Shown: in pieces, positions 19,986-49,626 of the stretch | Layout: the number at the start of each line of letters is the position of its first letter | Numbering within the stretch: the first letter of the stretch is position 1 | NCBI RefSeq assembly: GCF_964188315.1 | Contig: NC_135666.1 | Span: forward strand, 27,404,001-27,468,000 | Source of the DNA: Podarcis muralis | Taxonomy: Eukaryota | Direction of reading: 5' to 3' | DNA length: 64,000 nucleotides | The notes under the pieces: model-generated | The model's database searches: none | What the model was told of the DNA's origin: nothing | Seen by the model: the letters and a program-made list of their open reading frames with translations, nothing else | Translations under genes and position numbers: made by a program

Positions 19986-20141
19986 NNNNNNNNNNNNNNN
20001 NNNNNNNNNNNNNNNNNNNNNNNNNNNNNNNNNNNNNNNNNNNNNNNNNNNNNNNNNNNNNNNNNNNNNNNNNNNNNNNNNNNNNNNNNNNNNNNNNNNN
20101 NNNNNNNNNNNNNNNNNNNNNNNNNNNNNNNNNNNNNNNNN
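19986..20141. other. Assembly gap (156 N)
   Basis: Run of N. Confidence 1.
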
Positions 20142-46205: not shown

Positions 46206-47521
46206 ATGAAACTAATGAAGCTTAAGGTTCAGGACCCTTAATCCCAGAGGGGCCCCAGAAGTGATTTTAGTCCTCATTGCTTAACATTTTTGGGTCTAAT
46301 ACACCCACAATTTGTGTCATACAATTCAAACTGGGTTGGTTTTTTTACTGTATTTCAACAATCCCAAAGTTAAAGAGTCAGTAGTGGTGATCTGTCATGG
46401 AACAACCCTACTGAAGAAGAAAACAGTGGTTACCTAGAACTTGTTGCTGGTTGAGAAGTGGCCCGGTTACAGTTCAAGCTTCAAGGCCCCCAAAATGTAG
46501 ATTCAGGGCTGGCTGGAATAAATGGGCCACTGGACTAAAGGTTCTTCTCATGTTCACATGTTTATTTGAAAGCCAGCCACACTCAATTTCACCCAGGTAC
46601 TTATGCACAGCATTTGATCTGGGCCACAAAAGTTGGTCCTGGTTTTTTATTTTTGTTTTATTTTGGTTTGGTCTTCAAATCCTTTGAGATATTTGCCCAA
46701 TTTTACCTCCCAGCCTGACATCAGTCCCTCCAGCAATGATGTGTTTTGTAAGTTCTCGGATGGATGGGTGGGTGGAGGGAGGGAACAGCTGTCATTTTAA
46801 ATGTTAATTTCTGGGAAGAAACTGACTTAATGTTTGCTTCATTTTTTTAAACAAAATACATAATCGTTTCATGTCGACTTTACAAGTGTATTTAAGGGCG
46901 GGAGGCTGGGAAGCGAGCGCTGAGTAAGGCGCGCCAAGAGGCCGCCTCTAAAGACTTCCCTGCGTCAGGTTACAATCATTTCAAGTGAAGAGTTTTTGGT
47001 GGTTGAGGGTTTTGTCGTTTTTGTTTTATTGAAAGCTGCTCAGCAAACGAGCGTCTACCTCCAAGTTGCGATGCTCTAAAACTTTGCTCTAATTCACAAA
47101 CATACGTCCTTGCCTTAAGTCTTCTCCTGCCCCCCTTTTTGCATTTTATTAAAATGCGAACCACCGAATTTTTAGGCGTAGAAAGGGGAAGAAAGCAATT
47201 GTATGCTGCCTCCTATTCATTAGCTGCTCACACAGCATATGGGTCTATTCTTCTTTTTAAGGCAAAACCCACCAAGCCTGGCCTCCCCCCCTCCCCCTCG
47301 TGTCCTGGAGGAGAAGTTGGAGGAGGAGCGAGGCGGGAGGGAGGGCGGAGAGAGAGAAACCGTATCGGACGACCTCCGCCTCCTCCTGCGCTTGGAAGCG
47401 GGGAGTGATGTTGGGCGACGGTCCCTGACGCAGGGAAAACTTAGGCGTCGGTTTCAAGGCTCCTCCCTTCTGGTGAAAGGCAGACTGCGGGGCGCCTGGA
47501 AACCGGTTCGAGGGAGAGAGG

Positions 47522-47850
47522 GCTTGAGGGATTGCCACAAATGGTCAGGCGGCAGCGGTGGCGGAGAAAGAAGAAGAAAAGGCGGCGGTAGCAGCAGCAG
47601 CAAGAGCTGGAGCTGGCGCGCTCTGCCTGGCAGGCGAGAGAGAGAGCAGAGCGCGCTGGCGGCGCGGCGGAGGGACGTGCTCGCGGGGTGGCCCTCGCCG
47701 TCCTCCTCTTCCTTGCAGCCTCCCCTGCAGGAGGCTCAAGTTTGACCTGGCAAGAGAGGAGGTGAAAGGCGGCGGCAGCAGCAGCAGCAGGAGGGACCTG
47801 GAGAGGGAGGAGGCGGCGGCGGGAGCAGCAGCCAGAGGACCCGGCGAAGT
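47522..47850 (+). other. Probable FZD1 5' UTR
   Basis: TTGAGGGATTGCCACAAATGGTCAGGCGGC closely matches my recollection of the start of human FZD1 mRNA (AGTTGAGGGATTGACACAAATGGTCAGGCGGC). The TSS position is inferred. Confidence 0.6.
47541..47591 (+). CDS. Candidate uORF, 16 aa, MVRRQRWRRKKKKRRR
   Basis: Only ATG in the inferred leader, with G at +4 and TAG at 47589-47591. Out of frame with FZD1. Translation is not demonstrated. Confidence 0.45.
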   Translation: MVRRQRWRRKKKKRRR

Positions 47851-49626
47851 ATGGCAGAGAAGTGGACTCGGCAAGTTTGCAGCGGGGCCGAGGCGGAGAG
47901 GGGCAGCCGGGCCGGCGCTTTCTCCCCGCCGCTGCTGCTGCTGCTACTGCTGTGCACGGAGGCGCCGGTGCTTCCCGCTCTGGGGCAGCAGCAGTACAAC
48001 GGCGAGCGGGGCATCTCGGTGCCGGACCACGGCTACTGCCAGCCCATCACCATCCCCCTGTGCACGGACATCGCGTACAACCAGACCATCATGCCCAACT
48101 TGCTGGGCCACACCAACCAGGAGGACGCGGGCCTGGAGGTGCACCAGTTCTACCCGCTCGTCAAGGTGCAGNNNNNNNNNNNNNNNNNNNNNNNNNNNNN
48201 NNNNNNNNNNNNNNNNNNNNNNNNNNNNNNNNNNNNNNNNNNNNNNNNNNNNNNNNNNNNNNNNNNNNNNNNNNNNNNNNNNNNNNNNNNNNNNNNNNNN
48301 NNNNNNNNNNNNNNNNNNNNNNNNNNNNNNNNNNGCGAGAAGTTCCCCGTGCACGGCGCCGAGGAGCTCTGCGTGGGCCAAAACACCTCCGAGCGCGGCA
48401 CGCCCACGCCCTCGCTGGGACCCGAGTTCTGGACCAGCAACCCGCAGCTGCGGCCCGGCGGCGGCGGCGTGGCAGGAGGCGGGGGCGGAGGGAGCCACCT
48501 GGCGGAGCGGGCGGGCAGGTTCACCTGCCCCCGGGTGCTCAAGGTGCCCTCCTACCTCAACTACCGCTTCCTGGGCGAGAAGGATTGCGGGGCGCCCTGC
48601 GAGTCCGCGCGCCCCTACGGGCTCATGTACTTTGGGCAGGAGGAGCTGCGCTTCTCTCGCACCTGGATTGGCATCTGGTCGGTGCTGTGCTGCGCCTCCA
48701 CCCTCTTCACCGTGCTGACCTACCTGGTGGACATGAAGCGCTTCAGCTACCCGGAGAGACCCATCATCTTCCTCTCGGGCTGCTACACGGCAGTGGCGGT
48801 GGCCTACATTGCAGGGTTCCTGCTGGAGGAGAAGGTGGTGTGCAACGAGCGCTTCTCCGACGATGGCTCGCGGACGGTGGCGCAGGGCACGAAGCGGGAA
48901 GGGTGCACCATCCTCTTCATGATGCTCTACTTCTTTGGCATGGCCAGCTCCATCTGGTGGGTGATCCTCTCCCTCACCTGGTTCCTGGCAGCTGGCATGA
49001 AGTGGGGCCACGAAGCCATCGAGGCCAACTCCCAGTACTTCCACCTGGCTGCTTGGGCTGTGCCCGCTATCAAAACCATCACCATCTTGGCTCTGGGGCA
49101 GGTGGATGGGGATGTGCTCAGTGGCGTCTGCTTTGTGGGCATCAACAATGTGGATGCCCTGCGGGGCTTTGTGCTGGCTCCTTTGTTTGTTTACTTGTTC
49201 ATTGGCACTTCTTTCCTCCTGGCTGGATTTGTCTCCCTTTTCAGAATTCGGACCATCATGAAACACGACGGTACCAAGACAGAGAAGCTGGAAAAGCTGA
49301 TGGTTAGGATAGGGATCTTCAGCGTCCTGTACACAGTGCCTGCCACCATAGTCATTGCCTGCTATTTTTACGAGCAAGCATTTAGGGAACAGTGGGAAAG
49401 GAGTTGGTTTGCTCAAAGCTGCAAGAGCTATGCCATCCCTTGCCCCAGTAACCACCACCATCCGCCCATGAGTCCTGACTTCACCGTCTTTATGATCAAG
49501 TATCTCATGACTTTAATTGTAGGCATCACTTCTGGCTTTTGGATCTGGTCTGGGAAAACACTCAATTCCTGGAGGAAGTTCTATAGCAGACTCACCAACA
49601 GTAAGCAAGGGGAAACTACAGTGTGA
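47851..49626 (+). CDS. FZD1: Frizzled-1 (Wnt receptor), single exon, 591 aa
   Basis: Strong Kozak (AAGTATGG), poly-Leu signal peptide, CRD start [19 protein letters not shown] (FZD1-type rather than FZD2/7), 7TM region, KTLNSW (KTxxxW, 49555-49572) and C-terminal [15 protein letters not shown] ligand typical of FZD1. Confidence 0.97.
48172..48334. other. Assembly gap (163 N) inside the FZD1 CRD
   Basis: Run of N. The reading frame is preserved across it. Confidence 1.

Follow-up and report, generated by a model that had tools for sequence, protein, structure and literature searches.

The leader of the frizzled-1 gene (FZD1) of the lizard Podarcis muralis contains a short, strongly basic upstream open reading frame (uORF), called uORF1 here, which lies in a 64,000-nt stretch of contig NC_135666.1 (the window; positions 27,404,001 to 27,468,000 of the forward strand, RefSeq assembly GCF_964188315.1). 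By its sequence and position, uORF1 is the lizard orthologue of the poly-arginine uORF of mammalian FZD1. Its start codon (the upstream ATG, or uATG) is kept in all jawed vertebrates sampled and, judging from the alignment, is older than the basic tract that follows it, which appears together with a G-rich repeat of the amniotes. The constraint on this part of the leader looks like one that acts on the nucleotides and not on the peptide. We favor the reading that uORF1 is a cis-acting, leaky translational damper of FZD1, with a probability of about 0.5. The main elements, in window coordinates, are as follows.

47541-47591, plus strand: uORF1, an ATG, 15 further codons and a TAG, encoding MVRRQRWRRKKKKRRR*; read from the sequence, with orthologous uORFs in 9 amniotes (this and all later amniote counts include the window lizard itself).
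47523-47561, plus strand: conserved block 1, which covers the 18 nt before the uATG and codons 1-7 of uORF1; pairwise identity 0.85 and 0.93, respectively.
47562-47588, plus strand: purine-rich trinucleotide repeat, the source of the nine-residue run of lysine and arginine (K/R), read from the sequence; identity 0.56.
47592-47850, plus strand: rest of the leader, between the uORF1 stop and the FZD1 ATG; GC-rich, poorly conserved, with no ATG.
47851-49626, plus strand: coding sequence (CDS) of FZD1 (frizzled-1), a single exon of 591 codons; Fz and Frizzled Pfam domains and protein match.

The gene at 47851-49626 is FZD1, since its product carries the Fz domain and the Frizzled seven-transmembrane region (both detected by Pfam), its last 429 residues match frizzled-1 of Podarcis raffonei at 100% identity and the FZD1 proteins of mammals, birds, turtles and other squamates at 86-97%, and FZD2 and FZD7 match the window protein with lower scores. 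(Runs of N, masked or gap, occur in the window at 19986-20141 and at 48172-48334, the latter inside the coding region of the FZD1 cysteine-rich domain.) uORF1 starts with the ATG at 47541-47543 and ends with the TAG at 47589-47591, and 12 of its 16 residues are K/R, the longest K/R run being 9. That a frame of this composition opens at 47541, out of frame with FZD1, had been stated in an earlier note made by a model from the letters alone (the original prediction), and re-reading the letters bears it out. The uATG lies 310 nt before the FZD1 ATG at 47851, which places uORF1 in frame +1 relative to the CDS, and 259 nt separate its stop from that ATG. uORF1 is therefore an upstream ORF in the usual sense: ATG-initiated, 5' of the main CDS and out of frame with it. 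Its start context, CCACAAATGG, is a weak Kozak context, with C at -3 and G at +4. It is the sole ATG between 47409 and 47850, the next one further 5' being at 47408 (MLGDGP*). Of the 1564 ATG-initiated ORFs with 8-100 aa that the two strands of the window contain, none is richer in K/R (75%, against 46% for the runner-up). That the uATG would be the only one of the leader and would lie about 20 nt from the cap, as the original prediction had it, depends in both cases on an inferred transcription start site (TSS). An N-terminal extension of FZD1 was considered and rejected: uORF1 is out of frame, stops lie between it and the CDS, and its frame relative to the CDS differs among species.

FZD1 loci with 3 kb of flank were compared in ten species besides the window, none of them human: Varanus, Rhineura, Phrynocephalus, a penguin, a turtle (Carettochelys), a marsupial (Dromiciops, the monito del monte), panda, warthog, Xenopus laevis and a skate. 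In 9/9 amniotes the leader reads [A/C]CACAAATGG, after which come GTC AGG and a tract rich in CGG, and uORF1 opens with MVR and a basic tract whose longest stretch of K/R measures 7-14 residues. At the same leader position and in the same ATG block, panda, warthog and Dromiciops carry ACACAAATGGTCAGGCGG.., encoding MVR and a poly-Arg opening. The uATG of panda and warthog lies at -397, and the human RefSeq mRNA, which we take to start about 16 nt before the uATG, would fit this position. Xenopus keeps the uATG, its flanks and most of block 1, but reads MVGARF*, without a basic run, and the skate keeps the core and the uATG and reads MDSGARAG.., also without a basic run. Thus, the proposal that start codon, frame and basic content persist across amniotes holds for the uATG and the basic opening, whereas the frame relative to the CDS varies; and the proposal that the uORF is kept as far as human now has the panda, warthog and monito del monte leaders behind it, its human part coming solely from the preprint discussed below. 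The Carettochelys gene model (L004, 3001) has 629 aa and is labeled 'LOW QUALITY PROTEIN'; translating the locus does not reproduce the query protein, and the annotated start is misaligned with the other FZD1 starts, so that the distance of -154 between uATG and CDS cannot be set beside those of the other species.

A second upstream ATG (uATG2) opens a further uORF (uORF2) in the other tetrapods, and the lizard leader retains what is left of its surroundings.

47724-47749, plus strand: remnant of conserved block 2, the site of uATG2 in other tetrapods, CTTCATGA.., encoding MSLKFE / MNRKFP.

The block 2 motif, C.CTTCATGA.TC.CAAGTTT, is conserved from Xenopus to mammals (at 2867 in loci L001 and L002, 2828 in L010, 2915 in L003, 2865 in L005, 2808 in L006 and L007, and 2979 in L008). 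uATG2 is present in eight other tetrapods; in the window the triplet at 47729-47731 reads AGG, and uORF2 has therefore been lost in Podarcis. Because uATG2 is conserved in the other tetrapods, having a single uATG in the leader is a Podarcis peculiarity and not the ancestral state. In the placentals and the marsupial, uORF2 ends in ..KYG*, its TGA overlapping FZD1 codons 2-3; in the penguin it stops 2 nt 5' of the FZD1 ATG; and in Varanus, Rhineura and Phrynocephalus it is over 200 codons long and reaches into the CDS in another frame.

The human counterpart of uORF1 is already on record, and in reporters its poly-Arg stretch has an effect. Hashimoto et al. (August 2026; bioRxiv 10.64898/2026.08.12.739961) examined uORFs of 93-453 nt in human and mouse RefSeq 5' untranslated regions (5'UTRs), identified 111 that are conserved between human and mouse (at least 60% amino-acid identity), the human FZD1 uORF among them, and assayed these 111 as uORF-FLAG-EGFP fusions. 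Their 'translation-restricted uORFs' have an excess of basic residues and of local RNA structure, and genes with predicted members of this class have lower main-ORF translation efficiency. The human FZD1 uORF-EGFP fusion accumulates very poorly, and deletion of the poly-Arg stretch brings it to the control level. Since the uORFs were drawn from RefSeq 5'UTRs, the human and mouse FZD1 uORF lies inside the annotated mRNA. We infer that it is uORF1 that was tested, because placental uORF1 has 10-12 Arg and uORF2 at most 4 in a row. The original prediction had suggested an undescribed translational control; a poly-Arg stretch does block accumulation of the human uORF-EGFP reporter, but this was on record in the 2026 preprint. 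The lizard and human uORFs belong to the same gene and share the ATG block and the MVR-poly-Arg opening, as judged from the panda, warthog and marsupial orthologues, and lizard uORF1 has the N-terminal basic enrichment of the translation-restricted class (12/16 K/R, run of 9). On the other hand, it has only 16 aa, under the 31-codon cut-off of that study, mixes Lys (AAG/AAA) with Arg and is interrupted by Q and W. What the study itself shows is conservation between human and mouse and the accumulation of reporters; control of FZD1 output lies outside it.

How would a leaky damper of this kind operate? Its basis is an ancient ATG-containing leader element that, in amniotes, directly abuts (CGG/AGG/AAG)n, read as Arg/Lys in the frame of the ATG. 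Transcripts would start just 5' of the uATG and include uORF1 in the lizard mRNA, and the uATG, weak in context and probably near the cap, would capture part of the scanning ribosomes in vivo. While in the exit tunnel, the basic nascent chain would then, together with the G-rich codons, slow early elongation of a very short ORF, and the ribosome flux to the FZD1 AUG, and with it FZD1 output, would fall, leaky scanning and reinitiation across the 259-nt spacer supplying the rest. The 16-aa product would presumably still be in the exit tunnel at termination, and a stable or functional peptide is not expected. Exon junction complex-dependent nonsense-mediated decay is not expected either, because FZD1 has no introns. 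Block 1 may at the same time double as a promoter-proximal DNA element. Substrates of ZNF598 and ribosome-associated quality control have A-tracks of about 11 or more consecutive A, or long K/R tracts that cause collisions. uORF1, with A-runs of at most 4 and a K/R run of 9 codons, falls short of such a stall substrate, and poly(A)-track stalling with quality control was rejected for it on the length of its longest A-run.

Several observations, on the constraint, on the RNA and on where transcription starts, weigh against this damper. Mean pairwise identity among the amniotes is 0.85 from -18 to -1 of the uATG, 0.93 over the uATG and codons 2-7, 0.56 over codons 8-16, 0.30-0.38 over the rest of the leader and 0.51 over the initial 30 nt of the FZD1 CDS. 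The high values of block 1 in themselves speak for the damper, but the 18 nt before the uATG are conserved like the codons. Within codons 2-7, third positions are invariant in amniotes except for one change (in Rhineura), and the substitutions seen, CGG>CAG and CGG>TGG, are CpG transitions that replace R by Q and R by W. As far as these alignments go, this is the reverse of the pattern left by purifying selection on a peptide. The length of uORF1 in the nine amniotes is 13, 16, 16, 28, 33, 33, 37, 56 and 60 aa, and there is variation, too, in where it stops and in which frame it lies relative to the CDS.

The basic run itself comes from the repeat at 47562-47588 (CGG AGA AAG AAG AAG AAA AGG CGG CGG), which varies in length and composition by lineage. 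It belongs to a (GGC/GGA/GAA)n tract that yields Arg/Lys in the frame of the ATG and poly-Gly or Ala/Glu in the other two, and a basic frame is thus a 1-in-3 outcome. What fixes the frame is that the repeat lies directly against the frozen ATGGTCAGG and that slippage adds or removes whole triplets; Phrynocephalus has an additional G, through which the downstream purine repeat leaves the basic frame after 7 Arg. Since a frozen block and an abutting repeat yield a conserved ATG, frame and basic content all at once, the three are not independent evidence of a selected peptide. Nor does the basic character kept despite different codons, as the original prediction put it, hold up as a sign of peptide selection: the wobble sites are essentially frozen, the changes are nonsynonymous, and the frame is that of the repeat. 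(The CAG/TGG interruptions at 47553-47561, encoding Q and W, are common to Podarcis and Varanus and partly to Rhineura, and Phrynocephalus has pure CGG; this pattern implies parallel CpG decay or slippage re-homogenization of the repeat.)

A cap-proximal AUG is reportedly often skipped, a point credited to Kozak in 1991. Folding the leader (47520-47860) as a whole gave a minimum free energy of -144 kcal/mol, which does not surpass that of shuffled sequences (z = +0.80); an unusually stable RNA structure of the leader was rejected on this score, and the fold yielded no stable local structure. In the translation-restricted class, local structure was gauged by another metric, the base-pairing probability of the first 15 nt of the uORF. 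The human reporters were driven from a cytomegalovirus vector with an optimal Kozak context, FZD1 output was not measured, and which FZD1 uORF was tested is not stated (bioRxiv 10.64898/2026.08.12.739961). In addition, a human FZD1 fragment of -175..+71 (from the translation start), which is without the uORF, drives a reporter (PMC5047477), and some human FZD1 transcripts may start 3' of the uORF.

That fragment bears directly on a different account, in which the main TSS of the lizard lies 3' of 47541 or, only a few nucleotides from the ATG, within block 1, and most FZD1 mRNAs lack or ignore the uATG and leave the ORF unread. CpG-island promoters generally start broadly, and a CpG island covers 47300-48100; a squamate-specific initiator-like GCCACA would put a possible +1 at 47537, 4 nt 5' of the ATG. 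This account is nevertheless quite unlikely, given that the choice of RefSeq 5'UTRs implies human and mouse models that include the whole uORF, and that 310 nt without other ATGs and a uATG2 kept in relatives look like a transcribed leader. (As a sign of transcription, the ATG depletion of the lizard leader is not significant: one observed, 3.3 expected, P = 0.14.) No paper giving a mapped FZD1 TSS was found in the literature. A larger claim than the leaky damper would be a translational rheostat some 300 million years old, with uATG1 read in vivo, the poly-Arg/Lys chain selected to throttle flux, repeat length tuning the dose, and the second uORF, with its end at or across the main AUG, making an ATF4-like, eIF2alpha-sensitive switch in most amniotes that was lost in Podarcis; we consider this rather unlikely. 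Far less probable still is an Arg/Lys-rich micropeptide that functions in trans, for example as a nuclear or nucleolar localization signal (NLS/NoLS)-like or RNA-binding peptide, as had also been suggested. Its composition does resemble NLS/NoLS sequences, and the basic opening is kept in amniotes, but its length (13-60 aa), C-terminus and stop are not conserved, the C-termini being unrelated, the frog and skate are without a basic run, and synonymous changes show no excess over nonsynonymous ones. Instability is the rule for peptides of 13-16 aa, and the human uORF product accumulates very poorly, with the poly-Arg stretch as the cause (bioRxiv 10.64898/2026.08.12.739961).

The more serious competitor is a DNA element, and here the sequence further upstream has to be considered.

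47440-47510, plus strand: deeply conserved non-coding block, 30-100 nt 5' of the uATG; alignment from skate to mammals.

On this account, block 1 belongs to the core promoter or TSS region of FZD1 and the ATG is part of its motif, the downstream G-rich repeat is an ordinary CpG-island microsatellite, and the polybasic ORF is incidental, with little or no translational effect. We regard this as possible, with the odds somewhat against it; the DNA-element and uORF readings are not exclusive. Amniotes differ little or not at all at any position from -15 to codon 4, the wobble positions among them, and conservation is as high in the 5' flank as in the codons; ORF length, stop and frame are free to vary; and the skate and frog keep the motif while encoding unrelated peptides. 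Still deeper conservation is found in the non-coding blocks 30-100 nt further 5': the block at 47440-47510 has long stretches that do not vary between skate and mammals, its conservation goes deeper than that of uORF1, and by its sequence it is probably a core-promoter or TSS-proximal element. Candidate motifs in block 1 are a YY1-like AAATGG / CCAT core, an E-box (CAAATG), a GGTCA resembling the downstream promoter element and, in non-squamates, a PBX/MEIS-like GATTGACA. For the YY1 core-promoter motif (AANATGGCG / VDCCATNWY), the reverse complement at the uATG fits the loose consensus at 8 of 9 positions and the strict core at 5 of 7, as a match of sequence only. The strict YY1 consensus is thus poorly matched, as is that of TISU (translation initiator of short 5'UTRs), and squamates alter the GATTGACA half-site (A>C) yet keep the block. 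What else would set the ATG apart from its surroundings? The leader has only two conserved islands, and both contain, and are centered on, an ATG; by a rough estimate from base composition, chance would produce this with a probability of about 0.05-0.1, which is one point in favor of the ATG mattering. The human FZD1 uORF, moreover, lies inside a RefSeq 5'UTR and has a poly-Arg stretch with a measurable reporter effect. The original prediction had itself offered a DNA element with the basic content as a by-product of the repeat; this fits the substitution pattern at least as well as a uORF does.

Other known systems share some features with uORF1 and differ in others. Like the peptide-arrest uORFs (the MAGDIS uORF of AMD1, the fungal arginine attenuator peptide, the CHOP/DDIT3 uORF and the conserved-peptide uORFs of plants), uORF1 is short, and its nascent chain would act in cis. 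Those uORFs, however, keep their amino-acid sequence to the stop and arrest the ribosome either during termination or at one particular site, whereas FZD1 uORF1 conserves neither its C-terminus nor its stop and is constrained in its nucleotides; with neither amino acids kept to the stop nor purifying selection at the codon level, uORF1 is not a conserved- or arrest-peptide uORF. ATF4-type leaders offer another likeness, drawn from leader sequences alone: Varanus, Rhineura, Phrynocephalus, the marsupial and the placentals all have a short uORF1 and, 3' of it, a uORF2 that extends over the main AUG. Podarcis differs in having AGG in place of uATG2, which leaves it with uORF1 only and without an overlapping uORF2.

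The TISU and YY1 core-promoter elements, reportedly the subject of work by Elfakess and Dikstein in 2008 and by Xi and colleagues in 2007, resemble block 1 as ATGG-containing motifs near the 3' side of the TSS that are conserved as DNA and overlap a start codon. TISU, on the other hand, starts the main ORFs of very short leaders and not uORFs. As a candidate for the uATG it was rejected: ACAAATGGTCAGG departs from the consensus, SAASATGGCGGC (placed 5-30 nt from the cap), at -4, -3, -1, +5 and +6. A final comparison is with the CGG-repeat ORFs of 5'UTRs, FMRpolyG in FMR1 and uN2C polyG in NOTCH2NLC (reviewed in PMC8918734). These also have a CGG-type repeat in a CpG-island leader, in which repeat length sets peptide length, but their translation is in the Gly frame, in many cases from near-cognate start codons, and it is on expansion that they matter, whereas FZD1 uORF1 is an AUG-set Arg frame over a short repeat (7-14 codons).

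Other features of the leader and its flanks can be noted briefly. The leader from 47592 to 47850 carries CAG, GA and GGC runs, and simple repeats (CAG runs and GA dinucleotide runs) lie at 47590-47602, 47643-47656 and 47777-47792. A GA repeat in the 3' flank, near about 50200 (minus strand), reads ERERER on the minus strand. The ATG at 47408 lies inside a block (47405-47425) that is common to the squamates and the turtle; at the equivalent position mammals have GATTGG, an inverted CCAAT box and possible NF-Y site, about 130-145 nt 5' of the uATG. A scan of the leader against Rfam gave no family above threshold, and a minus-strand match to flavi_FSE (22.6 bits against a gathering score of 43) was dismissed as chance.

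What does this add to the 2026 report? The uATG is present in every sampled jawed vertebrate, and the basic tract probably arose with the GC-rich repeat of amniotes; the constraint appears to lie at the level of the nucleotides rather than the peptide; and a second uATG, equally conserved in the other sampled tetrapods, has been lost in Podarcis. A caution for uORFs of this kind is that a conserved ATG, frame and basic content can all stem from a frozen DNA block beside a trinucleotide repeat. FZD1 dosage affects Wnt signaling, and a brake in the leader, if the leaky damper is real, would be a direct handle on the level of the receptor; variants of the repeat or of the uATG would then be readable as dosage alleles.

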